Shown: piece by piece, positions 6,243 to 45,935 of the stretch
Position numbering within the stretch: the first letter of the stretch is position 1
How the letters are laid out: every line of letters starts with the position of its first letter
Assembly: GCA_965644295.1 (NCBI GenBank)
Contig: CBFFRP010000150.1
Location: 434,001 to 498,000 of the forward strand
Direction: 5' to 3'
From: Paraphysomonas bandaiensis
Taxonomy: Eukaryota > Protista > Chrysophyceae
DNA: 64,000 nt
Position numbers and translations under genes: made by a program
Notes under the pieces: model-generated
What the model saw: the letters and a program-made list of their open reading frames with translations, nothing else
Database searches by the model: none
What the model was told of the DNA's origin: nothing

Positions 6243-6503
6243 CTATTATACTTAAATGCAACAATAATGACCTTTTATTCTTCGCGTCATCAGTATATCA
6301 GTATCGCACTCCCACATTCCTCAATCAGATGTTGCCTCTCTTGTACTATCACACTTCCTTTCGACTCACTGTTGCTGGATACAGCGGAAAACCCTTATAT
6401 CCCACTGGTGTTCAACTACACACTCTCTTCCACGTGTTTTCTGCTACTGGCTATTATACTTAAATGCAACAATAATGACCTTTTATTCTTCGCGTCATCA
6501 GTA
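6243..6503. repeat. ~53-bp direct repeat (6243-6295 and 6451-6503)
   Basis: ctattatacttaaatgcaacaataatgaccttttattcttcgcgtcatcagtat present twice. Confidence 0.9.
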
Positions 6504-6882
6504 TCAGATCACCATACTCATAAGGGTATATTGCTGCTTCCCCTGGTTGCTGTGAGGCACACAAGGTAGTCCCAGATGAAAATTGCACAAAATGTATGTC
6601 TAGTCTTAAGCGTTCCAGTGTGGTAGTAATTGACTTATATCACTGCTATCACTTGTCATGCTGTACGTTGTACAGCGTCCCTACATACACATCTATCATA
6701 TAGCGAGAATGGTCGAACCTTGGTGCTTGCGGCGACGCACAAGCAGTTCTCGTAGCGTTACAAGAGTTTACACTAGTAGTTAGTAAATGGTAGATGCTTA
6801 TCTAGCTTGACTAGTTTGGCCATCTAGCTACTAAGCTGGTGCAGATTTTTAATGCCTATTGGTAAATATAAGACTTTCAATA
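6504..6882 (+). mobile_element. 5'-truncated LINE 3' fragment
   Basis: Similar to the reverse complement of 11935-12320; contains the invariant accttggtgcttgcggcgacgcaca and ends ataagactttcaata. Confidence 0.75.
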
Positions 6883-11234: not shown

Positions 11235-11368
11235 CGGGGCTACTAAGGAACTAGGGAACAATATATTGCAATACTATTGTTAGATAGCGCTTCATCAATC
11301 ATATTGATGGAGTTTTTAAACCGACCCAACAATACTATTTCAATATAATATATTTCTCCCTAGCCCTG
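11235..11368. mobile_element. hAT-type MITE, degenerate copy of 15808-15962 in opposite orientation
   Basis: ctagggaacaatata...tttctccctagccctg; flanks gtaaacaa/gcaaacag (6/8 TSD match). Confidence 0.7.
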
Positions 11369-11410
11369 GCAAACAGTTGTGTAAGCATAGTGGAGACTGA
11401 AGACTTAGCA

Positions 11411-11499
11411 CCCTCAAAACAAAGTCTGACTGGCACCTTTTCGTGGTGTTCTGGGGGGATAAGTACCGGAGATATTTCCCCGGGAAACTAACGTGAGCC
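11411..11499 (+). ncRNA. Putative HDV-like ribozyme (copy 1)
   Basis: P3-L3 ACC-UUUUCGU-GGU, P1' GUUCUGG(GGG) complementary to the element 5' end CCCUCAAAAC, P4 hairpin ccgg...ccgg, J4/2 CUAA; P2 partly degenerate. Confidence 0.5.
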
Positions 11500-11934
11500 G
11501 CAAACATAGTCAGCAGATATTATTTTGCCCACTCATAGCCGAATGCTTGTGTGGTACAAGGTACATAGGACACCAATAAGTGTCACTTGTGTACACACCT
11601 TTGGTCATTGACTAGTAAACAGGCATCCGGATATGGGCCCACCTCAAGGGCATCCGGGACAGGGCCCACCTGAAGGGTAACCGGGGTATTGGGCTGCCTG
11701 CTGAAGTCAAGCATCCGGGATGTTCACTTTACGGACTCAAAAAGCCTTAAGTTAGAGGCGGTTGCACCTTGGTGCTTGCGGCGACGCACATGCAGCTTTC
11801 GTAGCGTTAAATCGTAGGATAAAAAAAGTGTGTACTGGTTAGTTACAAGTAGAGGTCTAACTAGTTTGTCTAGCGTTCATCTAGCTACTAAATTGGTGCA
11901 GGTTTCTAATGCCTATTGCTAATAATATATATAT

Positions 11935-12390
11935 ATTGAATGTCTGATTATTTAGCAATAGGCGTTGAAAGCCTGCACCAATTAGTGGCTAGAAGAATGC
12001 TAGTCATACTAGTTAGACTACTACCCGTAACTAATCAATACAAACTCTTTTATCCTACTATTTAACGCTACAGAAGCTGCTTGTGCGTCGCCGCAAGCAC
12101 CAAGGTGCAACCACTTCCGTTCTTAGTGTGTGTTATGAGGCTCGCCATGATCGTGTGTCCTGGGACTCACCGGCGCGTGTGATCTGGAGGTCTCCTCTTG
12201 GGATGAGACTCCACTCGCTATATGATAGATAGCCTTATGTACCTCACGGGGACTGACTTATTAGCCTTATGGCAGTTAGAGGAAACAGTAATATGCCCTT
12301 CTGAGATTGGCGATCTGGTGGCCTTCCTTTAGGCATTGTTCCAAGTGGCTAGGAGGTATGTGGATGAAGGTCTTGCAAAAGGTTATGGCC
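11935..12390 (-). mobile_element. 5'-truncated LINE 3' fragment nested, inverted, in the tail of the 11411 element
   Basis: Reverse complement matches 31245-31550 (gccatgatcgtgtgtcc..ggactcac..cgcgtgt) and the shared tail. Confidence 0.8.
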
Positions 12391-13728
12391 TACTAATAAG
12401 ACTTTCAATATGAAGAATTAGCATCGTTCCAGGATAAATTCTAGATTCCAAACACTTTCTCAAGTAGCTAAACAAGCAATGCTATTTCCTATACCTCAAT
12501 CACTACTAATTGTAGCTAGTAGCTAGTAACTACATACACCGAAACTAATTATAGAATTGGGGTGGTGAAGAAGGCAATAAAACTGTTCGCTATATATCAA
12601 ACACATGGTCATCTACAAAAAAAAGTGTCTGGTCACAGTTGTTAAAACGTAAGACAATATTTTGCTTATATTCATCAACAAATTCTGAGCAGAAAAAATG
12701 AACCCAAGTTGATAGAAACCCATTCGAATGGGCCAAAAGTTGAGCTCACTGATATAGGACAACATAGTGGTTGCGTAACCAAAAAGTGCACCTCGTATGC
12801 CCAGTCCCTTGTTCTCAAGTGAAGGAATTAACATGAGGACAACAAAGGAATAATAAGTTTAAGACGAAGTGCTCTGTTAGTATATCAAATCACACATAAC
12901 CCCAGTAGATCATCCTGACATCATAACTGGGCATACGACGAGAGAAGAAGCACAATTTCCATATCCCATAGCACGTTGTGTATTACCAGCATATTACCCA
13001 CTTTCATCTAGAACTACTACACCCAAGACATTTACAAGGGAAAACTGGGGAAATTCCATCTTGAGCGGAATTTAGCCGTGATGTATACTACTTTATTTTC
13101 TTCTATGCTCAACATAGTAGCGCCCCATAGAGAGTAACACAGCGCACGAGACGTAAGCAATACTGTGAGTTGATTATTCATCTGGATGATAGGTATTCAT
13201 TGTCTATTAACCGTCAATCAACACGACGAACAGTGGATACAGATACATGCTCGTGTATTGCGGAAGATATTGAGATATTTCTACGTCACAGACGTGATGA
13301 ATGGGTGAGTGATATTATCTACGAATTTGATGATGAAACATGAATCTATCAGTGACCTTTGATTCTTGTTTGCCAGTGGAAATTATCATGAGCTGTTATT
13401 GCTATGACTTCGGATACAGCAGTATGTACCAGAGTGTAGCACAGTATCGCGATTCCTCAAAAAATCTTGAAGAAGCAAGAATGTGGAATACGCTTGAAAA
13501 TACGTATATGGTATATGCATACTATAAACAACTGTCGGACACAGTACTGTAATCAGTAATATACGGAGTGACTTTTTAGTAATTAAGTACGTACGTGATA
13601 TAAAAAAATATTTTCATATGAATTTTACAGTAACCATGTATGACAAGCGTGCCGTGATTACAACACAATAACTTTATAACTATGCATACATTCATAAGAT
13701 TGAGATTCAATGTACATGTAAAATAAGA

Positions 13729-14775
13729 ATGAAAGTGGGGTCCGTAGAATTTGACCCGGTGGTTGGTATTGTTGATAGGAATGAGCTTACGAGGACTAAT
13801 ACACTCAATGTGATCAGACAAGACCTCGAAATATTATCTACACAGGCATTACATTATCATGAGTTTGTCTCGTTATCTGAACTAGTGGATAGCAAACAAC
13901 ATTTCGTGTTTATTACATGCTCACTTATTGATTCAGATTTTGATCAGATAAATGATATGATTGGTAGGCATAGTATAACGTGCCCTATCATAATGCTTCA
14001 CCCTAACTGGACCACTGATTTGCTCAAGAAGGGTGTGAATACGTTCCCATCGAATACGTATTTTACTTCAGTGTCACTGAGAAGTGGATTTGTTAGGGAT
14101 ATTCTTGAGCGTGAACACAAGCGGTTGGGAATCTCGTCACCAACTTCTGATTTCCCCTTTCGCGTGACTACTGACGAGTCTGAAAGTCAGCCCTATATAA
14201 GGATACGTAAACGTCTTTTCTCACAGTTTTCGTTATCGAATCCTTCTTCAGGTAATAATTCCGAAGGAGACTCTTCTTCAGGTGAAACGTCATCTTCTTC
14301 CACTATAAGCTCAACGTCGTCATCTTCCCACCAAGAAACGGTACAGAAGCCGAGAAACACGGCTAATTCTATAAGAATGGTGGTTGGACGAACCGGTGCC
14401 GAGAGAGAACTCCGTGTGCTATACTTGAGTGATTCAGTAGAAGCAGAGAAATATTTCAAAAGTGTATACTTCCCGGGTACACTCCTGTCGTCACTCCTGC
14501 CTGAGTGTGCCGACAAAATTGCCGAGTTTCTTGCATCCAGTCGAGGTGTACGAGACTCAACAATTACTATCCCATCCTCAGCAGGAAGCCCAATAGAGTA
14601 TCATGTCTCGGTGTATCCACTCAGTGTAAGTTTGAAGAAGTATATTGGGTCACCAGCATATGTGGCCATGGGTAACAGAATTATCAAGGATTCTGAAGGT
14701 CGCGCCGTTATGCCCAAAGGAGTAATTTTCCTTCAACCAGGCCAGAATCGTCCTGATTCTGCACGTTCTTACTAA
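13729..14775 (+). CDS. Hypothetical protein with a possible N-terminal pseudo-receiver domain and Ser-rich linker
   Basis: 348-aa intronless ORF; VGIVDRNELTR...VFITCSL...CPIIML resembles a receiver domain lacking the acceptor Asp. Confidence 0.6.
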   Translation: MKVGSVEFDPVVGIVDRNELTRTNTLNVIRQDLEILSTQALHYHEFVSLSELVDSKQHFVFITCSLIDSDFDQINDMIGRHSITCPIIMLHPNWTTDLLKKGVNTFPSNTYFTSVSLRSGFVRDILEREHKRLGISSPTSDFPFRVTTDESESQPYIRIRKRLFSQFSLSNPSSGNNSEGDSSSGETSSSSTISSTSSSSHQETVQKPRNTANSIRMVVGRTGAERELRVLYLSDSVEAEKYFKSVYFPGTLLSSLLPECADKIAEFLASSRGVRDSTITIPSSAGSPIEYHVSVYPLSVSLKKYIGSPAYVAMGNRIIKDSEGRAVMPKGVIFLQPGQNRPDSARSY

Positions 14776-15807: not shown

Positions 15808-15962
15808 CAGGGATAGGGAACAATATATTGTATTGCAATACATTGTACAATATATTGCAATATATTGTAATTGTATTGTAGAACCGGTTTAAAAAACCCG
15901 TCAATACTATTGATGGAACGCTATCTAACAATACTATTGCAATGTATTGTTCCCTATCCCTG
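15808..15962. mobile_element. hAT-superfamily MITE
   Basis: TIR cagggatagggaacaata / tattgttccctatccctg; perfect 8-bp TSD gtataata. Confidence 0.9.
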
Positions 15963-23342: not shown

Positions 23343-23356
23343 AAAAACGACAAAAA
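23343..23356 (-). terminator. Pol III oligo-T terminators of the 5S gene
   Basis: Two T5 runs on the minus strand directly after the 5S 3' end. Confidence 0.75.
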
Positions 23357-23474
23357 CGGACAGTACCCGGACTTCGCACGTGGTCACCCACCGTACTACT
23401 AACCGGGCCAGATGCAACTTAACTTCCGCGAGCGGAACGAGAGCGGGTGCGGTTTGCATTGTATGACCGTCCAT
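23356..23474 (-). rRNA. 5S rRNA gene (single dispersed copy)
   Basis: AUGGACGGUCAUAC...GAAGUUAAG...UUAGUAGUACGGUGGGUGACCACGUGCGAAGUCC...CUGUCCGU; ends base-pair; ~119 nt. Confidence 0.95.
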
Positions 23475-24542: not shown

Positions 24543-24566
24543 CTTCATGCTTTATAGGGTAAGATG

Positions 24567-24653
24567 CCCTCAACAAAGTCGGGCTCGCAACTCTTCGTGG
24601 TGTTCTGGGGGGATAAGTACAGGAGATATTTCTCCGGGAAACTAATGTGAGCC
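24567..24653 (+). ncRNA. Putative HDV-like ribozyme (copy 2, best P2)
   Basis: P2 GGCUCGCA/UGUGAGCC, L3 UCUUCGU, P1' GUUCUGG + GG, P4 ggaga-uauu-ucucc, J4/2 CUAA with candidate catalytic C at 24642. Confidence 0.55.
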
Positions 24654-25130
24654 ACTCATGATAGCCGAATGCTTGTGTGGTACAAGGTACATAGGACACC
24701 AATAAGTGTCACATGTGTAGATATCTTTGGGCCTTGACTAATAAAAAAGGCATCCGGATATGGGCCCACCTCAAGAGCATCCGGGACAGGGCCCACCTGA
24801 AGGGTAACCGGGGTATTGGGCTGCCTGCTGAAGTCAAGCATCCGGGATGTTCACTTTACGGACTCAAAAAGCCTTAAGTTAGAGGCGGTTGCACCTTGGT
24901 GCTTGCGGCGACGCACAAGCAGCTTTCGCAGCGTAAAATAGTAGGAGAATAAAGTTTGTACTAGTTAGTTACAGGTAGACGTCTATCTAGCTTGACTAGT
25001 TATTTCTAGCTACTCAACTGGTGCTTGTTGAGTTCTGCAATATGATGTGATATATGCTAACAATTGGTGAATGTCCAATGCTAACAGTGCTGATTCATAA
25101 TGCCTATTGCTAATAATAAGACTTTCAATA
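24567..25130 (+). mobile_element. Non-autonomous retroposon (ribozyme-headed SINE/SIDE-like), copy 2
   Basis: TSD atagggtaagatg (24554-24566) / atagggtaaggtg (25135-25147); same 5' start ccctcaacaaagtc and 3' end ataagactttcaata as copy 1. Confidence 0.85.
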
Positions 25131-25379
25131 GGGAATAGGGTAAGGTGGCTTGGATAGGGGGTACCAACATTGAATTTCCTCAATATTAAAGCTTTCTGAT
25201 TTTTTTGTATATATATCGGCTCTATCTCTTACTAAAACTACAACGGAAAAGTACACTATACCTTGTGAATTCGTATATCATACAAAATGAAAAAAGAAAA
25301 TAAACAGAGGCTATATATGACATATCATGTCAACCTAACATAGCTCTCTACACAAACATCCTACCAGTCGTGTACTCTT

Positions 25380-26813
25380 CTAGGAAGATGTAATTACATT
25401 CCACGCCCACATTTCAAATGCTTTAGCAGCAGCCAGAGCTATACTTTCATCTGATCCTTTGTGATATTTATCCACAGATCGCTTGCCCACACAAAACCCC
25501 ATCACCACAGGCTCCCCAACGCCATCTGTCATGTCTAACCATTCTACCCAATCCAGAATCATTGGGAACTCGGATCCCACATACTCACCGAGCTCATTCA
25601 TATCGCCTGCATAGCATGAAGTATCGTACCACCGGCATAGTCCCGTGACAGGCTTGGGCCACCATCTCGTCGTGTAGCGTAATATAACCTTCTCACAACA
25701 TCCCATTCGAATACGATCCAGAGACTTCATATGCATTTCTGGTAGATTTGGGGAAAATAGTATTGTTCTATTCTGAATGACAGAAATCGGTACAGTGCAT
25801 ATGCATTTATCTGCACAGATTATTTCGCCGGTTGCAGTAGTGGCAACCACCCTATTTCCAGACCAGTCGATGTGGGTTACCGGAGTACTAAGACGAACAT
25901 TTAATCCCTCCGCCTCGCTATCTAATAGTGCTACATAACCTTGCTTGATGTAATGATCTTCATTACCAACACCGAGCTCCTCCAATCCCCATACTGCAGA
26001 GGTGTCATCCAGGTCGTACCCAAGGTCAGAGTTGATGTCGCCAGCCACTGCTAAATGAGCCAAAAACTGTTCATCCCTGGGAAAACGAGATATGCTCTGC
26101 TGTAATACACCCATCAGTGGAAGGTCCACTTCCTTCCCGCCATCTGAGGAGCCACTAAAATCGTTAACAGTCACCCAGACGTGGTCGTACACACGCTCCA
26201 CAATACCACGCATGCCAGAAAGTGACCGACCATTGCTAGCAGAACATAATGCATCATGAAAACATGTAGGAACAACATCCAATTCCATTCTATTCACTGC
26301 GTGCTCCGCCATGAAGTTCGTAGGAAACTGTTGGAGCCAAGTTGCCCCCAAATCAACCTTTACTGACTTAACCGAGGAGTCTCTGCCAATATCCACAGTG
26401 TGAACACGCCCCCCAATTCGATCTCTCGCTTCCAAAACTATCACATTCTCGTTTCCGGCCAATTCTCTGAGTCGCGATGCGGCATATATTCCAGCGGCCC
26501 CGGCTCCTATCACGACGTAACTCAACGCTCCATCCGACGCTGACTCATACATCATATTGGCAGCTCTCAAGCCGCTGTACGCCGCCCCGTGCACCATAGA
26601 TGGCATATGGTCTGTACAAGCTTCGCCGGCTAGTATGAGAGCATCGGAAATGGGAGAGCCTAGCACTACACGATCACTAGGGCTGCCATTCACCCTAAGC
26701 TGAGACCATGCGCCCTGAGAGTAAGGGTTCTCGCTCCAATGGGAGACTTTCCATTCCACTGGTGTGTGCTCTTTATCATGAAAGAATTCAGTCCGTGAGG
26801 AATAAGAATGCAT
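25380..26813 (-). CDS. Flavin-containing amine oxidase, circularly permuted, intronless (477 aa from ATG 26813)
   Basis: WSENPYSQGAWS / LILAGEA / VHGAAYSGLRAA precede VVIGAGAAG..VLEARDRIGGRV..DLGATW. Confidence 0.9.
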   Translation of the reverse strand: MHSYSSRTEFFHDKEHTPVEWKVSHWSENPYSQGAWSQLRVNGSPSDRVVLGSPISDALILAGEACTDHMPSMVHGAAYSGLRAANMMYESASDGALSYVVIGAGAAGIYAASRLRELAGNENVIVLEARDRIGGRVHTVDIGRDSSVKSVKVDLGATWLQQFPTNFMAEHAVNRMELDVVPTCFHDALCSASNGRSLSGMRGIVERVYDHVWVTVNDFSGSSDGGKEVDLPLMGVLQQSISRFPRDEQFLAHLAVAGDINSDLGYDLDDTSAVWGLEELGVGNEDHYIKQGYVALLDSEAEGLNVRLSTPVTHIDWSGNRVVATTATGEIICADKCICTVPISVIQNRTILFSPNLPEMHMKSLDRIRMGCCEKVILRYTTRWWPKPVTGLCRWYDTSCYAGDMNELGEYVGSEFPMILDWVEWLDMTDGVGEPVVMGFCVGKRSVDKYHKGSDESIALAAAKAFEMWAWNVITSS

Positions 26814-26838
26814 TACAAGAATGTGAAGATGGATACAC

Positions 26839-26843
26839 GTATG

Positions 26844-26874
<31 letters not shown>

Positions 26875-26927
26875 GTATGTATGTATGTATGTATGTATGT
26901 ATGTATGTATGTATGTATGTATGTATG

Positions 26928-26958
<31 letters not shown>

Positions 26959-27329
26959 GTATGTATGTATGTATGTATGTATGTATGTATGTATGTATGT
27001 ATGTATGTATGTATGTATGTATGTATGTATGTATGTATGTATGTATGTATGTATGTATGTATGTATGTAGGTATGTATGTATGTATGTATGTATGTATGT
27101 ATGTATGTATGTATGTATGTATGTATGTATGTATGTATGTATGTATGTATGTATGTATGTATGTATGTATGTATGTATGTATGTATGTATGTATGTATGT
27201 ATGTATGTATGTATGTATGTATGTATGTATGTATGTATGTAGGTATGTAGGTATGTATGTATGTATGTATGTATGTATGTATGTATGTATGTATGTATGT
27301 ATGTATGTATGTATGTATGTATGTATGTA
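26839..27329. repeat. (TATG)n microsatellite, left arm (~490 bp)
   Basis: Direct reading; rare TAAG/TAGG variant units. Confidence 0.98.
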
Positions 27330-28913
27330 CAGTGCACTCTCGATATGATCAAGGGTCTGTACCATAGGCAAACTATTTCTCATAACGAGAGTGTTGACCA
27401 TTAGAAACCCCAGTTTTATTTTATAGAAACCATTTTTTTTGTAAAAAACCCGGTTTTGTAGAAAAAACCCAGATATTTTTTGTAAAACTCAGTTTTTGGA
27501 TATTAAAACCATGGCTTTATGCTCAAAACTCCTACCTCTATGTTTAAATATTTAAAATAGCCTTGTTATTACATCATAGGCATGCGTTGTCTGATCTTAG
27601 CTACAATAGGACAGCTGTATAACCTAGAATTACTACATAACTGCTATAGTGTAGAATTAGATCTCTGCACCGAGAAAAATTGTTGTATCGTTCGTTGTGA
27701 CGAAGATTTTGCGCGCTTCTCTAAGTAACTTCTAGTCACTTCTGAAGCGGTCTTAACAAACGTGTAGTGCCAGGTAGCAGAATTTTCACTACTACTTTCC
27801 ATAGTAAAGTCATATACAACTCGCATGGCATCATTGAATTGATTCAAAGTTACCGTAGATGAAGACGCGCGGTCTATATTTGTATCACTTTGACAATCAT
27901 CATCCACCAGCGGTATTTGCGGAGAAATAGAAAAAGATTCCAAGCGCTCCATGGCTTCCTCAATTTCAGTTTCGACTACCAATTGATCACTTTCAACATC
28001 ACACCATCACAACAGCATCTTCCAATTGTTTCATCACTGCAATACCGTTCACCTTTCCATACATCATCCAGTATATTCATACAGTCCAAGATATGTGGTT
28101 TCAAACCGTACATAATTCCTTTGCAAACAGATTAACATGAATAAAACTGTTTCGACTCTTCAACACATTGTTTAACCAACCGCTCGATGCTTTAAATAAA
28201 CTGCGCGTTTCTTCATCTTCTTTATAGATTATCTATAAAACACAATGTTTAGAATATGTATTATTTTCTTCTGGATCTTGTAGACCTTTGCATAATCCTT
28301 AGCCTTCTGCTGCAGGTACAACCAGCTCAAGCCGCATTTATCCGTCTTGTAGTTTTCTTGGCGAAATTTAATGTAGTCAACAATTTTTTTCTCAACCTCA
28401 GGAAATGAACCCTTCCGTTGCTTCTTGCGGCCTGTGCAAGTTTCTATCTTCAGTGTTCCATCATTGCAGGCTTTAATCCATTTACTTAATGCTGAAGGGC
28501 TAAATATGTTTCCCTTGTACGCAACGAATTGCTTGAGGGTTTTGAAATGACCCTCTTTATATTCTTTCACAAAATTATATTTCTGCACATCCGAGAAACT
28601 ACTCAACGATTTCTTGCGCTTGGTACCGATGCTGCATTCATCTGACATCGCTGCGTACAGCAGACGAACAAATGCAGTAATGTATGTATATGTAATGAAT
28701 GTGTTCATGATTATTGCATACAGCAGTATTGTACTCTCTGCACATATCCAACACTTTCACAAAACCCTAACCCAAAAGAGGGGTTTTTTATTAAAAACTA
28801 AGGATTTATATAAAATGGGGGTTTTCATGCTAAAAACCCCGTACCAATGCCTATTCCGTTTCCCATAACGAGAGTGTTGACCATACATCGATGATCATAT
28901 CGAGAGTGCACTG
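27330..28913 (-). mobile_element. pogo/Tigger (Tc1-mariner) DNA transposon, internally deleted
   Basis: Perfect 22-bp TIR cagtgcactctcgatatgatca, TA TSD; CENP-B-type HTH (RKGSFPEVEKKIVDYI..LQQKAK, intron, FKASSGWL) then a jump to C-terminal PHILDCMNILDDVW; DDE core absent. Confidence 0.92.
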
Positions 28914-29117: not shown

Positions 29118-29653
29118 ATGTCTGACGACGGCGACTACGAGGATAACCACGACAGGCGAAGCCGCAACAAGGGGAGGAGGAAAGGCAGAGGCCATGCGCA
29201 CATGGATGACGAGGATAGGTACAAGGGCCGTGGCGGTGTATTTGAAACAATTGAACAGGAATCTACTGATGGACCAGCACAATGTACGTATTTTCTTTAT
29301 GCATCTGATGTACTTATGTTATCCGCTTATAGCAATTGAGGGATGGATTGTGTTTGTGTCGAATGTTCATGAGGAAGCCCAAGAAGATGATATACTGGAT
29401 AAGTTCTCTGAATATGGTGATGTGAAGAATATTCATGTCAATCTTGATAGACGAACTGGTTTTGTTAAGGTTATCTCTTTCATTGTAAATTTAATATTAT
29501 CTTCACTCCATGAATCTGTAGGGGTATGCGTTGGTGGAATTCGAGTCGCGAGACGACGCTGCGGAAGCAATAGACAAGATGAATGGTCAGGAATTACTGG
29601 GGCAAACAGTTACTGTTGATTGGGCGTTTGTAGCACGGCCAAATAAGCGTTAG
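29118..29653 (+). CDS. RBM8A: RNA-binding protein 8A (Y14), exon junction complex; 3 exons
   Basis: GPAQ / [45 protein letters not shown] / GYALVEF..TVDWAF. Confidence 0.95.
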
Positions 29654-30539: not shown

Positions 30540-31558
30540 TCTTTAACTCTTCAACAACTGAACTCAACAACTGCACTTGCATTCCACAGAAGTCTATTAA
30601 AGGGCAAGAACATAAGGGCCTCCAATCGATGAGGTGCCATGGATTTTCGCAGATTATTCATGTTTTTGCGAAAACCTTTCTACGCAATTAGTGTGCTTCA
30701 AGCAGAGGTTAGTTGGTTTGGTCTTGCGGTCGTGTGTAAAGATAGCTCACACCTACGCCAGAGAGTGCTCAATGCAGCATTGACATGGGACAAATCTTTC
30801 AGTATAGGGAGAAACCGGGCAAAAATCAAACAACGTCTTGACCTGCCCAAAGCTGCATAAACTGACTGTGGCTTTCGACTAGACTCACTCAAACACATGT
30901 GTCTAGACTGCACAAATGAAACCATCACCCAAATACGGGAGACTGCCTTTCACAGCCACAAAAACGCGCTTCAAGAGGTACTGAGAGGTCAGGGTCAACC
31001 CCACTGAACCATCAATGCGCTACAGCGGCTTTCCAGCAGGGCCTGTAGCCCCTCTTTCCCACTCACTCATACCCACTCACTCTTTCCCACGAACCCACCA
31101 CTCATACCCACAGGAACATATCACCGTCCCGCACGTAACCCTCAGGTCCTCGACAACGACGCCGTCTCCGGCAACTCTACCTATGCCTGAGGCCCAAACG
31201 GTGCACTGAGACAACGCCACATTCAACCTCTCCACCCACCTCTCAACATACACATCTAGCACTTGGAACACTCAGGACCTTAATACAGAACCCTGTACCT
31301 CAGAGTCCGGTGGAACTTCACCCCAAGGGGAGACCCCCTGGTAACACGCGCCAGTGAGTCCTGGGACACACGATCATGGCAAACCTCACAATCAACATTA
31401 AGAAGAACGGAAGTGGTCGCACCTTGGTGCTTGCGGCGACGCACAAGGAGCTTCTGTAGCATTAAATAGTAGGATAATAGAGTTTGTGCTGATTAGTTAT
31501 GGGTAGAGGTTTAAATAGTCTATCTAGCATTCAACTAGCCACTACATTTGTGCAGATT
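30540..31558 (+). mobile_element. Decayed non-LTR retrotransposon (LINE) 3' portion: ORF C-terminus with CCHC zinc knuckle plus 3' UTR
   Basis: Reading through the stop at 30858-30860 gives ...WDKSFSIGRNRAK...KAA*TDCGFRLDSLKHMCLDC (Cx2Cx8Hx4C with the first C lost); downstream is the shared tail motif at 31421. Confidence 0.65.
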
Positions 31559-32857: not shown

Positions 32858-34364
32858 TTAGATGAAACTATCCTCGTAGTTATCGTAGTCTTCCGCCTCG
32901 TCATCGTCGTCGTCATCCATCATCGCATTGTCCATCTCTGCAGCGATTTCCATCTCCGTAAAGTCCACCCTCCAGCGCAATAGGCCACCAATTCCACCAA
33001 AACCTTTACAAAACTGTGAGCCCTCCTGAGATCTATCAGTCACGAACTCGAGGTTGGCACCGAATTTTTTGTACTCATTGGCAAGCCACTCTACAAGGGA
33101 GAGTTTATCGATAATCTCTAGTTCAACTCCCGTGACCGGGTCATGGAAATGTACGTCATTTTGTTCCTGTTCAGGGGTTAGGTGTAAAACCTTTTCTTCC
33201 TGGGTACTCGTGTTACGGACTGTCAATCGATTCACCGACAAGTTCTCCCAAACTATCAAGGTTTCAACTGCACTCATCTCTAGCGCCTGCAGGGTGTCAG
33301 AAACCATGAAGCAGTACTTCCCTGTGTCCTGATTAATTTCATCAAAGTACTTCTGAAGAAGTTTCTTCTCCTGTACCAACTTGACATTGGCAAGGGACTC
33401 GGCTGACAACTCGATCGCCTGATTAAACCCTGGGTCCATGCCGTACGAAACATCCACTGTCTTTATCACTGCTCGTGCTAACCGAGGATCAAAGTGATCC
33501 GAATTTAGCAGATCAGTCTTGAAATCAGCCGATCCCGCCATTACCAACCCCGTAACATTGACCTTGTTGTCTGAGAGGAAAAGCTGTACCGCTAATTCAG
33601 CACATTTACGTACGTAATTGTGCCTTTTCTCCATACGCAAACGAGCGAAACGCAACGCTGACTGACCACCACGTCCGTGTTTTTTTGGAAGCTCTACTGT
33701 GAATTTGTGAAGTACATCACGGGTGTTTCCCTGAAGGGTTCCAAACAAACAGCCGTTACCGTCCATAACGATGAAGCCGAACTTATCGTCATCTTCAAGA
33801 AGCTCGTTAAGTGCCTATTCATGTGTCACAACAGTTTTTAAATTCCCAACAAACTATATTACCTCAGTATGAAATTTGTTGTCACATAAGTATAAAGATG
33901 TATTAATAGGTCTGAATGGCTCAAAATCGATGTTTACTCTCTTTTCCTTGCCATCATCTGTCAGAATCGTTCCACAGTATAAAACGAGACCATTAGGAGG
34001 AACCCGATTATACAGTTTAAGCTTTTGCTGAGTAGATGTAATCGCACCAAGCACAGACAACCTATTCACACGAGACTTAATATTGGATGCGGTTCCGTAC
34101 TCGTTGGCAAGCATTGTACTAATCCGCGATATCTAACACAGTGAACACGTTACTATATGAAAATATGTCTAATGAATCATACCTGATCTCGTGGGGGGAT
34201 GATGAGTGATATCATACTCGTGCCGTTCCTAATTTATATTAGCTCAGCATAATAATGACCACGTTCACTTACCCTCTAGCAGCTTGCAAGCTCTTAATGA
34301 GCTTCTTGACTTTCCACATCTCCACCTGTCTGTCCTGGTCATCATCTCCATCCTTAGCTGACAT
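32858..34364 (-). CDS. ERF1: Eukaryotic peptide chain release factor 1 (4 exons)
   Basis: [42 protein letters not shown]. Confidence 0.98.
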
Positions 34365-40112: not shown

Positions 40113-40412
40113 CCTCAACAAAGTCAACTCGCACTTTTTCGTGGTGTTCTGGGTTCTGGGGGATAAGTACCGGAGATATTTCTGCATATATAATGAGCAG
40201 ATGAGCAGATAATTTCTGCCTAATAGCCGAATAATTGTGTGGTACAAGGTACATGGGACACTAATATAAGTGTCACTTGTGTAGACTGATGACTGACGAA
40301 TAAACATGCACCTGTGATCTGTGACAGGGCCCACCTCAAGGACATCCGGGGTATTGGGCTGTCTGCTGAAGTTAAGCATCCGGGCTGTTCACCTTCTTAA
40401 GGACTCAAAAAT
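40113..40412 (+). mobile_element. 3'-truncated, diverged copy 3 of the ribozyme-headed retroposon
   Basis: Starts cctcaacaaagtc; aligns to 24568-24870 with one internal repeat unit missing; CUAA lost. Confidence 0.8.
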
Positions 40413-40895
40413 CTTGAAATCAGCAGATGTCAGGTATATCAACTAATCATAAGACATGCACTACTACTACGACTACATCATATCATTTTAATGTGACACA
40501 AGTAATATGACCTTGTACTAAAATGTTTTAATTTTCCTTCGTTACTACGTGTTATAAAAATCTTTTTTTTATTGAAACGACTATAGAGGAAAGTCAGGAA
40601 GTTCATTGTACATGCTCAAGCGTGTTGAAAACTAAGCGCTCTTCCATTTTCTAGTAGGGGTAACAAGTGTGTTTTGTGCTCTAACCATTCAAAAACCAAA
40701 ATTGCAGGAATGAGCGAACATGCATATTGCCGTGAAATGAGCTTGCTACATCACTATTATAGCCTAGGAGGTATAGCGGTTGTCGGAGGAAGTGTGCGTC
40801 CTTTAAGTCTCAAAATTAATTAGTATAGTTAAGGCTACGTACGATCGTACAATCAACATTACGAACCTGAAATCAATACAATCATACACAGTACT

Positions 40896-43800
40896 TTACG
40901 CTCCATCTCTAAACGATACAGGGTCTGGAAAATGCATATTATCGTCAATACCTTTTCTGCGTTGTTCACTGATCATTTCAGAGCCAGCTTGGACCCATTG
41001 ACTCTCCGGATGAACACGAGAAGCCCCGACAGGGACATAGCCTTTCACTTTAGGTTTAAATGATGAAGGTAAAACAGACACTTCAGAGACCATATCTTTA
41101 CAATCATCTACTACAGGCTGTTTAGTGGTACCTAACGGTGTATAAGTACCCGCTGTTGATGTTTTAATAATTCTCTTAGGTTTAGATATCGATGCCGATA
41201 TATCTTCGCCAAGTGCCATCTTTCCATTCCTCCTCAGTAGAGGAAGTTCTAACTTCTTTACTACCTGCTGGACAGTCTCAGGATTTCCATATACTAATAT
41301 TCTATCATCTCCGTTGACAATGGTGTCCACTGGTGGATTGGTAAACACATATGGCAGAATAGCTTCGTTCCGAGGTAAAGGGGTTCTGTAAAGAGCAAGG
41401 GGGAGTAGCTGATAAACAACAAGTATTAGCATGAATTCAACAACTCGTGCGTTGATAAACTTACACATCTGGAGTTCAGTGCCCGAAATAGATCACCGTA
41501 TTTTCTCCCAAAAAAAGTGTTAGGGACGGTAACATGGAGTAACATCTGCATATCTTGACCGCATACAAGTTTTTCACACAGTTGGGGTGTAATAGTTCCA
41601 AAAAAACTCTGAAAAAACTCATTAGGCAGTACATTCCATTGCTAAGTTCATACCTGGCATAGCATAGAATCAAAAGACGAAGGTACAATTGCTCTGCCAG
41701 CAGCAAATATTGGCAAGACATGATGAGAATCATCGACGTCCCAATAGTTGCCATTCTGAGTCTACACCAAAATCATAATGAGCTTAACATCTGAGGTGAG
41801 GATAAACCTATACCTTCTTTTGTTCTTTCTTTGTGCTAACAACAGGGGTATGACTACGGACCATAGATGTCTTCGACTTTTGTCCGCTGCTATTTTGTTG
41901 AGGCCCTACAGACAGACGCCGCATTGCTGCACTTTGCCTCCGCCTACTAAACTTTCCCGCGGTTAGTTGGATACATTCTTTGTGTTGGTCCAATACTGCT
42001 TCAGTCTTCATGTGACCAAGAAGAACATCAACGTCGATACTATTTCTGAACTTGTAGTTTCCTTTCAAACACGATGCAAGTCCGGTTCCTGTATCGCCCC
42101 AAAGCGGCCCACGACTTGTAACGTCGCGTTCAAGTTTACTCCGCCGTACAATTGCAGAGTTTAGAACCCCCATATTGTTCGGGCATGATAGTTCGACAGT
42201 AAAAAAGACGTCCCGAGGCACAAATCTCTCGACCTTAAGGTACTTAAATATGGCATCCGAGTCCACATTGGAGGTTTCATCCACATTTATTCGCTCCCTC
42301 GAGGCAAGAAGAACAAGGGCATAAGCTGCCCGCACATTCATCAACGTTAGCTCTTGATTCGACGACACATTACTGTCCAAGAAATACACATCATCGTATC
42401 GGCTCTGAATTTGGCGCCACTTCCTCGGCTCACCAGGATTAACGATTAAGATTGGGTGGTACGCATCGTCAACTACCAGCGGTTTTCTCAACTCACTCAC
42501 AAGTAAAAGTATGTGATCCATACAACCAAAAAATATTATATGGCCTTTGAGATCAGCCGCATCGTAAATTTCTTCAGATGGCGCTCCAAATCTGGGCACG
42601 GATTTCTGAACAGAGTCATTTGAAAACTGAGGCAAAGCGGCATCAAGCGATCCTCTGCGGCTTTGGTTTGCCAGGACGGGCGCAGTCCGCATAACTGCTG
42701 CCACTCTGCGGGCGATTCCGCTTCCAGAAGGGCCAGATTGAGCAGCGGTGCTTTGAATGATTTCTCCTGCGCCAGATTCGCTTCTTCCGAACTTTCTGCT
42801 TGTAGATTTCTTCACGCTCTCACCCCGTTTGTTGTCCTCATCATGAATACTGCTCGTACGTGTAGAAAGAACTCTTCGAAGTTTCCGCTTTTCTTCCTTA
42901 TCTGCTTTAAATTTCGATACCAGCGATGCAATACTCGGGTTCTGAGAACTTAAATCTACGGAGGAGATAACTTCTCCAGAAGGTTGCTCTACCGGTGTCG
43001 ACAAATCTTTTGTTGGGGACGGACTCATGGCGGACTCTGTTTTTAACGCCGCCATTCTCGCCAACATGGCCACATCTTTTACAGACCTCTTACCCTTCCG
43101 CTTGGACATAGAATTTAATCGTGTCTGTTGCAGTGCCGCCACAATACTCGCCGGTTTTGTCGTTGCTGCAATACTTGGGGAGTTCAATGCACCAATCGTA
43201 CTCTGCTGAACTGCTTTTCGCGCAACCATCGCAAATTTTCCTTTGGCTCCATCAACCCCCGTGGTTTGAGCATTAACTGTGCGGACAAGTGCAGCAGCTT
43301 GCTTGAGGGACTTCAGCTTGTTCTTTTTGCTAATCATATTCTTCATGCTCTTCATATTCGTCATTTTCCCTGAGGAAGACTTCATTTGCAGTAGAGCTTT
43401 TTTTGATACACTAGGAATGTCCCGCATATCCCGCAGCTGAGGAGAATTGTTATCATCAAGCAAGTCAAGTGTCTCATCGTTAACACTAACGAAGCAGTCA
43501 GCTGCGTCATCGAGGTCTCGATCTAGTTGTAGCTTGACTGGTGGACTCTGAGATTCCAGTGACAATTCTGATTTCACTGTCGTAGGCTGTGATTGATCGT
43601 CATCAATAGAAAACTTCCTCATGAAATCGCCTCTTATAGAATCTACTTTGATCGTTGAGCTCGGCTTATCAACACTGACCACATTTTTGCAGCTAAAACC
43701 AACAGGATCAATAGGATGCTCAATGTAACCTAGGAAATCATCGTCATTCTCTTCAGACGAGTCAGTATCGAAACCAAATACGCCATTGTCCGCCACCTGG

Positions 43801-45935
43801 TTAAACACAGTGTCGCGCTTGCGTACAATCGCAAAATCACTATCAATTAAGTTTTGGGCCTTCTCCAGGTGCACAATATCTTTCATGTGGCTACTACTGG
43901 TAGATGCAGTGTGGACAACTGGAGCAGAACCTATCGAATCAATATTTCTGTGTCTCCTGACAGCAAACTGCTGCTCGGCGGAGATCATATTCTGCAACAT
44001 GCGGTCTACAAGTACAGAGTCTGTCATTGAATAGCCGATAGCACTGGCGACAGCATTGTTAGGGGCAAGCAGCACCCCGACGTTGAACTTTTCAAAGAAT
44101 GCCGACACTGACTTGAACTTCTTTCGCTCATACTGCCTCGGGTTGTAGTAAAATCCTTGGTCCTCTGAAGAGTATACTCCCACAAAAGTGCACTCGAACT
44201 CAATATATATGGCTTCTACCAAAAGGGACCAAGAAAATCCCAGCATTTGGAAGAAGTTGTGATCGATAGGTACGTAATAAAGCTCCATTCCTACCCCATA
44301 CGTATACTCGGATAGCCAATTGTCCCCAACTTTCTGGGCTGCGTACTTTCCACAGGTGGAGGAAAAACTGTGAAAGAGATTCTCGACGAGTGTCGCCAGG
44401 CCTGGGCATATTGCGTTTCTACACTGCAATGTGGTTTTATATTCGTCTAAACAAAGCACAAGATCCGCGTCACTGTCTTTCAGTAGATCTCGGTCCTGCG
44501 AACGCAACACTTGAACAAGACACTCCAGCCTGGCGTTGAAGTTATTTACAGAAAGGGTCCGCAGTACAGTAGCGGCATCATCCAGTAGAGCGTCTTCCTC
44601 ATCCACCTCCACATTACTCAGAAAGAGCATTCCCGAGGCGATGTCTGCACGGGCCTTCTGCAAATCTTCCATATTCAGTGCAGAACCTATAATATACGAA
44701 ACGCGGCTATCGAATAACGGCGAATGGATAAGGTCTTTCACTTCATCCACCGGCTCGGCGGGGCTCAGTATCACCAGGTGAAACTCCGGCGTGTTAGTCG
44801 CATATCGGTCTGGGTGAAAGAACTCCCGGAATACACGTGAGAGTTTAGATTTGTCATTCACGTGTCCACATAAAATGAGGTGGTTTTCATGTGGGCGGGC
44901 TTCATACGTGGTTCGAAAAGGAGAGTTCATTGAGAGAAGGGTTTGAAGCTTGTTAATCTGCATTGGAATAACTATAAGAGCGGCAATGATTAGCATCAAC
45001 GTCGCTATTCTAGAGGCATTATTTGTGGGATTAAAGTCGCCATATCCCACCACAGATATCGTCACAACTACGAAGTACAGACACTCAAAGAAGGCCAATG
45101 AGCGGCAGCGAATCTTCGATGGCTTATACTGCGTATCCTGCACATCGTGCAGGGCATAACAGTTGTTTTCACGGCAATCACATGTCGGATCATCGAATGA
45201 AGAGAAGTTCGAATCACAAGATGGCTCATACCCAGTTTTCTCATTTATGTACTGACAGTCGTAACTTAACTCATTTACATCGTTCTCTGTCAGATTAATG
45301 ACTCCAGCGGCAAGAAAAGTCAAGCTCAACAATGCAAGTATCAGAGTTATGATTTGTCGCTTTACACCACTAAACCCACCCAATAGACGAAACGTTCGCA
45401 ATATTCTAATAAGGCGCAATATTCTCGCAAACCGGAGCCATGATATGTTCGGAGCCTGTTGAATATATGTTAAATATACAGGGATTATTGTTACGATATC
45501 AATCCAAGCCATGGGAGACTTGAAGAAAGCAATCGTACTGCTCGCAATAAACCAACTGACTATGAAGTCCATAAGAAAGAACTGAGTAATAATGTTCTCA
45601 ATAATTGAATAGATTTGTAGCCAGAGGTATGAATCACGATAACTTTCTGCCACATAAATTGCGCATGCAAGTAGTGAAAGGACAACTTGTAATATATCCC
45701 AATACGTTCCGCCAAGAGAATTATACTTCAGCGATATTAAGTATTTTTTAAATGTACTGATATCATATGACCTGTGCTCAGCACAGAATATTCCCCAACA
45801 ACCCGCTTCTTTATTTAAATCATCGATTGCATGTGCTGACTGTGATTTTACTGAGAGGTAAGCCTCTGATTTCCCCATGTTAGATAGACGAGACTGGTTC
45901 ATACCAGTGTCCGGCACCTGTCTCTTAATAGACAT
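40896..45935 (-). CDS. Calcium-activated BK/Slo-type potassium channel alpha subunit
   Basis: S4 LRFARILRLIRILR, pore TISVVGYGD, RCK1 HLILCG..EFFHP, PGLATLVENL, RCK2 HIIFFG, C-terminal PYVFTNP..DRILV exons. Confidence 0.92.

Follow-up and report, generated by a model that had tools for sequence, protein, structure and literature searches.

A 64,000-nt stretch of the genome of the chrysophyte Paraphysomonas bandaiensis (GCA_965644295.1, contig CBFFRP010000150.1, here C150:434001-498000; hereafter the window) carries several short repeats that end in a common 3′ tail, and this tail very probably joins them to a long interspersed nuclear element (LINE) in a "stringent-type" partnership between a LINE and non-autonomous retroposons, hosted by an ochrophyte (stramenopile) alga. 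The observations that carry this reading are the shared tail, its linkage to a reverse transcriptase (RT) open reading frame (ORF), the target-site duplications (TSDs) around both kinds of element, the fixed 5′ ends of the short elements, and the copy numbers and youth of the copies across the 62.6-Mb assembly (669 contigs). To judge from their alignments, at least three non-autonomous families (A, B, and C) carry the LINE tail, and the autonomous partner is, by its domain content, a retrotransposon lacking long terminal repeats (non-LTR) and of the apurinic/apyrimidinic endonuclease (APE) type.

Short elements and their common 3′ tail

Two full copies of family A lie on the forward strand of the window, where an earlier note on this DNA had placed them. 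Each is flanked by a 13-bp TSD, as the note had reported, with 12/13 bases matching between left and right: TGAAGACTTAGCA (11398-11410) and TGAAGAATTAGCA (12411-12423) around copy 1, and ATAGGGTAAGATG (24554-24566) and ATAGGGTAAGGTG (25135-25147) around copy 2. The first copy had been taken for a single 1,026-bp unit; it is instead a family-A element (11411-12410) interrupted in its tail by a complete 460-bp family-B element in reverse orientation (11935-12394, minus strand). The 5′ part of this copy, which comprises head, body, and most of the tail (11411-11926), corresponds to consensus positions 1-492 at 89% identity in a blast map, and its last 16 nt (AATAAGACTTTCAATA) were displaced to 12395-12410 by the family-B insertion. 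Copy 2 (24567-25130) is 564 bp long and 81% identical to the young consensus, with an internal insertion of 62 bp at 25025-25086 and four extra bases, GGGA, between the end of the element and its right TSD. The length of ~500-560 bp given earlier can be narrowed to a typical value of about 510 bp, the standard family-A element being 509 bp long and non-coding.

Across the assembly, the family-A head motif occurs 1,218 times, in many cases at a fixed spacing, typically about 270 nt, upstream of the tail motif, and the family accounts for ~1% of the genome, its about 1,200 copies falling into two or more subfamilies. A genome search in which 40 of 2,923 first-look candidates were scored returned about 40 near-full-length copies, and young copies are 96-98% identical to their own consensus. 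TSDs with at least nine matching bases (9-15 bp) were recovered by an automatic search for 15 of 23 full-length copies, while control pairings of flanks from mismatched loci reached at least nine matching bases in only 8 of 2,000 cases (0.4%). All 21 copies aligned with their flanks begin at the same base (CCCTCAACAAAGTC..., CCCTCAACAAAGTCGGAC...), and at their 3′ ends ...AAGACTTTCAATA is followed by 0-5 TA-rich bases before the downstream TSD. Family A is therefore short, non-coding, dispersed, and TSD-flanked, the traits of a short interspersed nuclear element (SINE). Terminal inverted repeats were absent. Nesting of one tail-bearing element in another is frequent, with B inserted into A in the window, and A into A, A into B, and the LINE into A at other loci.

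The tail is marked by an invariant 22-mer (CTTGGTGCTTGCGGCGACGCAC) present at five positions in the window (6719, 11768, 12083 on the minus strand, 24895, and 31423), where none is expected by chance, and at 1,988 positions in the genome when up to two mismatches are allowed, against 0 for the reversed control. This core, which spans 11768-11789 (forward strand) in copy 1 of family A, would fold into a pair of small neighboring hairpins, one with a CUUG loop and one with a GCGA loop of GNRA type (GCAC-CUUG-GUGC and UGCG-GCGA-CGCA), enclosed by a longer stem, and it is unchanged in every lineage sampled, even where overall identity drops to 70-77%. A second, long hairpin is predicted 3′ of the core, in which several pairs are kept through two-sided changes, such as A-U to G-C in three to four sequences. 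The extreme 3′ end reads ...AAGAC(A/T)TTCA(C/A)TA and passes into a short (TA)n or (CTA)n run; poly(A) is absent from the tails of the LINE and of the short elements. Family A aligns with the LINE from ...AGAACGGAAGTGG to the 3′ end, over ~190 nt at 87-90% identity, a stretch that represents most of the 243-nt 3′ untranslated region (UTR) of the LINE and includes no coding sequence. The earlier note had correctly recognized a tail common to other pieces, but its ~170 bp fell short of the actual extent, which starts ~13 nt upstream of the boundary it drew. Five of the six related pieces it counted carry the tail core, while the sixth, at 40113-40470, is a variant whose tail is short and of another kind.

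This sixth piece is an old family-A variant on the forward strand with a possible TSD, GACTAC[G/A]T; it consists of head, body, and a linker motif (CAGCAGATGTCAGGTATATCAAC, 854 genomic occurrences), followed by only about 27 nt that end in (CTA)n. This linker, which begins CAGCAGATGTCAGG..., is that of a second family-A arrangement, in which it is located 266 nt 3′ of the head motif, and all seven linker-bearing copies examined continue into a tail variant in which GTGA replaces the GCGA tetraloop and about 40 nt are absent from the apex of the second hairpin, which is thus shorter. Examples of this GTGA-loop tail, preceded by the CAGCAGATGTCAGG linker, are found at L026:3136-3297, L011:336-503, L007:1251-1415, L017:2545-2704, and L057:1748-1903. 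Since the linker arrangement ends in the GTGA-loop tail and the 40113-40470 piece in a short (CTA)n tail, a single head/body module has been fitted to different tails.

Family B is built on another head. Its last 280 nt correspond to the last 280 nt of the LINE, i.e., the end of the ORF plus the 3′ UTR, at 91% identity, and its 180-nt 5′ head is unrelated to the LINE. The element nested in copy 1 of family A has at least 39 other genomic copies that are 99% identical and share the same 5′ start base, and the family-B head motif occurs 133 times in the genome, where the family numbers about 130 copies. Family C, which is older, is represented in the window by a 3′ part at 6505-6882 (forward strand), with a head related to that of family B and a tail (6710-6882) that matches those of the LINE and of family A at 70-76% identity. 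Beside this piece lies a perfect 54-nt direct repeat (6243-6296 and 6451-6504, at a spacing of 208 nt), its second copy adjoining the 5′ break at 6505; other family-C copies carry about 113 nt of B-like head sequence at the point where the piece breaks.

The partner LINE and the proposed mode of mobilization

The partner was found by comparing the genomic coordinates of Pfam RVT_1 matches with those of tail motifs. Among the several RT types that the RVT_1 search detected in this genome, one, with an 882-bp match, precedes the tail motif by exactly 2,382 bp in contigs C11, C15, C25, and C28, match and motif lying on the same strand, and in each of the four LINE loci that were read a giant open frame stops about 66 bp before the tail motif. 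The tail thus proved to be linked to an RT ORF at four loci, which is the opposite of one outcome that the earlier note had regarded as fatal to its pairing; the other, that the repeats would belong to an LTR or tyrosine-recombinase element, did not materialize either. Eight old LINE 3′ fragments had no RT ORF within the 10 kb upstream of them; the copies concerned are 5′-truncated.

One LINE copy of 8,701 bp (C433:106088-114788, minus strand) is full length and flanked by an 11-bp TSD (CCTTGTGGCTT). It has a 16-nt 5′ UTR, a 243-nt 3′ UTR, and a single intact ORF of 2,813 aa, in which about 880 N-terminal residues without a Pfam match are followed by Pfam-supported domains: a SET domain (residues 887-991), an AP endonuclease (PF03372, Exo_endo_phos, 38.6 bits, residues 1057-1294), and, downstream of the latter, the RT (PF00078, RVT_1, 55 bits, residues 1751-2044). 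Motifs of RNase H type (FTDGS, YELIG, HTDCQ, VRSHPE, and ADAVA) and a CX2CX8HXCX2C knuckle were read in the translation 3′ of the RT; Pfam returned no match for the N-terminal 1,100 aa or the C-terminal 772 aa, so that the RNase H and knuckle assignments carry no score. The SET domain, which lies just upstream of the AP endonuclease (C433:106088-114788 and L054:435-8873, both minus strand), is kept in relatives at 36% identity. LINE copies are mutually 98-99.9% identical, some of them are truncated at different 5′ points, and TSDs of 11 bp and 21 bp were observed. The 5′-terminal 25-mer of the LINE has 13 genomic copies and stands 5,265-5,266 nt before the RT match wherever both are listed, and self-comparison of the full-length locus revealed no terminal direct repeats of LTR type. 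One 5′-truncated copy of 3.9 kb (L051:5483-9924, on C15), which is 99.9% identical to the copy on C440 and has a 21-bp TSD with one mismatch, interrupts a family-A element in reverse orientation, at the 5′ edge of that element's tail.

Within the window itself, an older LINE lineage is present as a decayed, 5′-truncated 3′ end (30744-31554, forward strand) that is 74-77% identical to the young LINE and lacks the last ~35 nt of the tail. The Cys-Cys-His-Cys (CCHC) knuckle noticed earlier in the longest tail-bearing piece is a real remnant, located at 30639-31010, in which the codon of the first Cys is now a stop. The broader proposal of an autonomous and a non-autonomous retroelement joined by their tail is likewise borne out, given the fixed distance of the tail behind the APE-RT ORF, the similar TSDs, and the lack of LTRs.

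Under the partnership model, the RT of the LINE would recognize and bind the structured tail, and RNAs bearing this tail would be copied in trans by target-primed reverse transcription at nicks made by the endonuclease. Insertions produced in this way would be expected to have TSDs of 9-15 bp (up to 21 bp) and no poly(A). Slippage at initiation is a feature of other stringent LINEs, and the short terminal repeats and variable bases before the TSD would fit such slippage. Mobilization in trans by the LINE protein is what we infer from the TSDs being of the same kind and from both partners being young. The system also looks currently active, as the LINE ORF is intact, LINE copies agree at 98-99.9% identity and those of family B at 99%, and ~1% of the genome consists of family A. 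Three points weigh against the partnership as described. First, the case for mobilization in trans is drawn from element anatomy alone. Second, the LINE-derived part of family B matches the young LINE that was sampled at only 91%, compared to 99% among B copies, so that the actual partner of family B may be another LINE subfamily. Third, many family-A copies carry another linker together with the GTGA-loop variant of the tail, for which no RT-linked partner appeared among the listed coordinates.

The family-A head and competing readings

The earlier note had described the short element as ribozyme-headed. The first 87 nt of family A (24567-24653 in copy 2 and 11411-11500 in copy 1, both on the forward strand) can indeed be drawn as a candidate, unproven fold similar to that of the hepatitis delta virus (HDV) ribozyme, a nested double pseudoknot starting at base 1, with helices P1 (consensus positions 1-6/40-45), P2 (15-22/81-87, with a bulge), P3 (23-25/33-35), and P4 (53-60/64-71), a 7-nt L3, and a candidate C76 in J4/2 (C76-U-A-A before the 3′ strand of P2). 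Such a ribozyme would cleave itself and, as in R2 and L1Tc/NARTc, free the RNA at base 1 from read-through transcripts of RNA polymerase II (Pol II), a proposal that we consider possible but doubtful. Consistent with it, every full-length family-A copy starts at the same base, a centroid fold gives P1, P3, and P4, and P4 shows G.U-to-G-C changes as well as one C-G-to-U-A change. A liberal descriptor of the fold is satisfied at a fixed start by only 15 of 5,000 shuffled sequences (0.3%) and by 389 of 42,604 genomic 95-mers (0.9%), and not by the 5′ ends of family B or of the LINE; this descriptor was, however, devised post hoc, with the sequence already seen. Internal T4 and T5 runs speak against transcription by RNA polymerase III (Pol III), and imperfect HDV-like folds can work, as illustrated by L1TcRz, which is active though "partially compatible" with the HDV consensus and has a single-pair P1.1 (PMC3185411).

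Several features of the head argue in the opposite direction. No solution is obtained when P3 has to adjoin P1 as in canonical ribozymes, with 0-1 nt between them; the drawn fold needs a non-canonical linker of 2-4 nt there (4 nt with the helices given above), and P1.1 amounts to at best one pair in the consensus, with no clean 2-bp version. The folding energy of the head equals that of shuffled sequences (z about 0). Across 30 distinct heads, which are very alike, 91.3% of cells pair compared to 91.1% in shuffles, with one compensated pair and no covariation above the chance level, and between subfamilies the head is no more conserved than the body. The Rfam models of HDV, CPEB3, and drz ribozymes gave no match at E ≤ 10, which is weak evidence as these models omit pseudoknots. 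A more elaborate and distinctly speculative version, to which we give rather little weight, would have the head act as a working non-canonical HDV-like ribozyme on a promoterless chimeric element that is cut from read-through transcripts and copied by the SET-bearing LINE, the same head/body module having received different LINE tails as LINE lineages turned over. To our knowledge, a ribozyme-headed element that is not derived by deletion from its LINE would be the first of its kind, and also the first in a stramenopile.

It is unlikely that family A is a conventional Pol III SINE, whose 5′ end would be a Pol III start and whose head would hide an unrecognized internal promoter or a diverged small-RNA gene. 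Family A is like typical SINEs in its size, in being non-coding, in its fixed 5′ end, and in its LINE-derived tail, but no tRNA was found by ARAGORN, and no 5S-, 7SL-, or snRNA-like match was obtained with Rfam even permissively. The absence of poly(A) and of a tRNA or 5S head, which had been read from the letters, is upheld. Rfam searches of the whole window at the gathering threshold, and of a window copy and a consensus-like copy of family A at E ≤ 10, returned only a 5S rRNA gene and hairpin artefacts caused by the inverted tails. That 5S gene (23355-23474, minus strand, 100.7 bits), ~1.1 kb from copy 2 of family A, ends at a T5 run, with TTTTT-G-TCG-TTTTT terminator runs after it. Family A has a T4 run at nt 26-29 and a T5 run ~35 nt before its 3′ end, and because the Pol III-transcribed 5S gene of the same window terminates at such a run, the two runs inside the element speak against Pol III as its polymerase.

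The earlier note had also raised the possibility of a short internally deleted element (SIDE), in which the family-A head would correspond to the 5′ end of the LINE. The 3′ end of family A is LINE-derived, as expected for a SIDE, and the 5′ comparison covers the young LINE, while other LINE lineages exist (the older one at 74-77% identity and the one implied by the GTGA-loop tail). Nevertheless, blast detected no similarity between the family-A head or body and any part of the 8.7-kb LINE, the LINE 5′ end (GCTCGCTGAAGCCAAGATG..., with its 16-nt UTR) is unrelated to the family-A head, and in the contigs listing both, no head motif stands where the 5′ end of an RT-bearing copy would be expected. 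The SIDE origin is therefore very improbable, and family A is, on this comparison, a chimeric SINE-like element rather than an internal-deletion derivative. Finally, readings of the repeats as DNA transposons, as LTRs, or as the split ends of elements of LTR or tyrosine-recombinase type have a negligible probability, as the tail occurs once, at the 3′ end of the APE-RT ORF, the full-length locus lacks a terminal direct repeat, terminal inverted repeats are absent, copies are 5′-truncated, and TSDs vary from 9 to 21 bp; copy ends and self-comparison thereby rule out LTR, DIRS, and DNA-transposon readings.

Genomic setting, known counterparts, and significance

The window has ~40% G+C and eukaryotic gene content. 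Host genes near the repeats encode domains 2-3 of eRF1 (32858-33766, minus strand), whose closest named relatives are those of Ochromonadaceae sp. CCMP2298 (81%) and Ectocarpus (79%), a Slo/BK-type potassium channel (41808-45935, minus strand), and a Y14/RBM8A-like exon with an RNA recognition motif (about 29300-29620, forward strand); kinases are also encoded within the window. A 96-nt inverted repeat, 84% complementary, has its arms at 11252-11347 and 15861-15956, 4.5 kb apart, and encloses copy 1 of family A together with a 348-aa ORF (13729-14775) without a Pfam match; these arms may be the terminal inverted repeats of a DNA transposon. Positions 26697-27400 hold a long microsatellite of (GTAT)n type, with periodicities of 4, 8, and 12, within a 673-aa ORF (25380-27401), and similar arrays are found elsewhere in the genome, e.g., at L046:6870-7690. 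Beyond the assembly, the repeat family is abundant in assembled contigs of the "organism A" sequencing runs, which show presence only and not RNA ends, and pieces of it are present in marine poly(A) metatranscriptome assemblies, where assembled contigs again indicate presence and are no proof of transcription. Together with the eRF1 relatives, this occurrence points to a marine ochrophyte stramenopile as the host. A scan of metagenomes for diverged family-A heads gave 16 matches, all attributable to chance.

Stringent LINE/SINE pairs that share a 3′ tail were reportedly described by Ohshima, Okada, Kajikawa, and colleagues, including eel UnaL2/UnaSINE1, CR1 with the tortoise SINE, and RTE with Bov-tA. 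The system described here resembles these pairs in that a short non-coding element carries the structured 3′ UTR of its partner, poly(A) is lacking, the elements end in short terminal repeats ((TA)n/(CTA)n here and (TGTAA)n in UnaL2), a stem-loop is conserved in the tail, and the LINE and the short element have the same kind of TSDs. It differs in heads that are not derived from tRNA, 5S, or 7SL, in the presence of at least three unrelated or partly related heads on one tail, in a LINE partner of giant size with one ORF that includes a SET domain, and in its ochrophyte algal host.

Two other systems offer partial parallels. The R2 SIDEs of Drosophila are likewise non-autonomous, lack a Pol III head, and borrow the LINE 3′ end for target-primed reverse transcription; they are internal deletions that retain the LINE's own 5′ ribozyme, and their precise 5′ end has been attributed to this HDV-like ribozyme (PMC3414825). 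In family A, by contrast, the head bears no relation to the 5′ end of the LINE, which has no such fold, and insertions are dispersed and not specific to rDNA. In the L1Tc/NARTc, ingi/RIME, and SIDER elements of trypanosomatids, a SINE-like element is also the partner of an APE-RT-RNase H LINE, and a 77-nt 5′ module beginning CCC... acts as an HDV-like ribozyme that only partly fits the consensus (PMC3185411, PMC4035085). There, the LINE and its short partner share the 5′ module and end in poly(A), whereas in the present system the partners have the 3′ tail and not the 5′ module in common, and poly(A) is absent.

For the LINE protein, the nearest solved structure is that of human LINE-1 (L1) ORF2p, which matches in the RT region (E 2.6e-8) and has the same order of APE followed by RT. 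Unlike L1 ORF2p, the partner LINE has one 2,813-aa ORF with an N-terminal extension of ~880 aa, a SET domain before the APE, and RNase H-like motifs after the RT, and its RNA would require a structured tail rather than poly(A). Closer counterparts are three metagenomic relatives (P0001-P0003; 36% identity, 2,805-3,392 aa) with the same giant SET+APE+RT architecture. Within this group the 3′ UTR is conserved; it lacks poly(A) and ends in a similar ...TAATAATAAAAGA... motif, but is otherwise not alignable with the tail described here. Two of these relatives (L059 and L061) have a separate ORF of ~350 aa upstream.

The system provides a worked case of LINE/SINE-type parasitism from an ochrophyte alga; no description of such parasitism in diatoms or other stramenopiles was found in the literature searched. 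Tail sharing between LINEs and SINEs is a classical phenomenon, and what is new here is the host lineage, the lack of a Pol III-type head, the occurrence of several families per tail, and the SET-bearing partner. A SET (lysine-methyltransferase-like) domain is unusual in a LINE, and its conservation in relatives that are 36% identical makes it a feature of interest in its own right. Should the family-A head turn out to self-cleave, retroposon biology would gain a wider range of known HDV-like ribozymes. The system is useful for genome annotation, as a source of insertion-polymorphism markers, and for the study of how an RT recognizes a structured tail.

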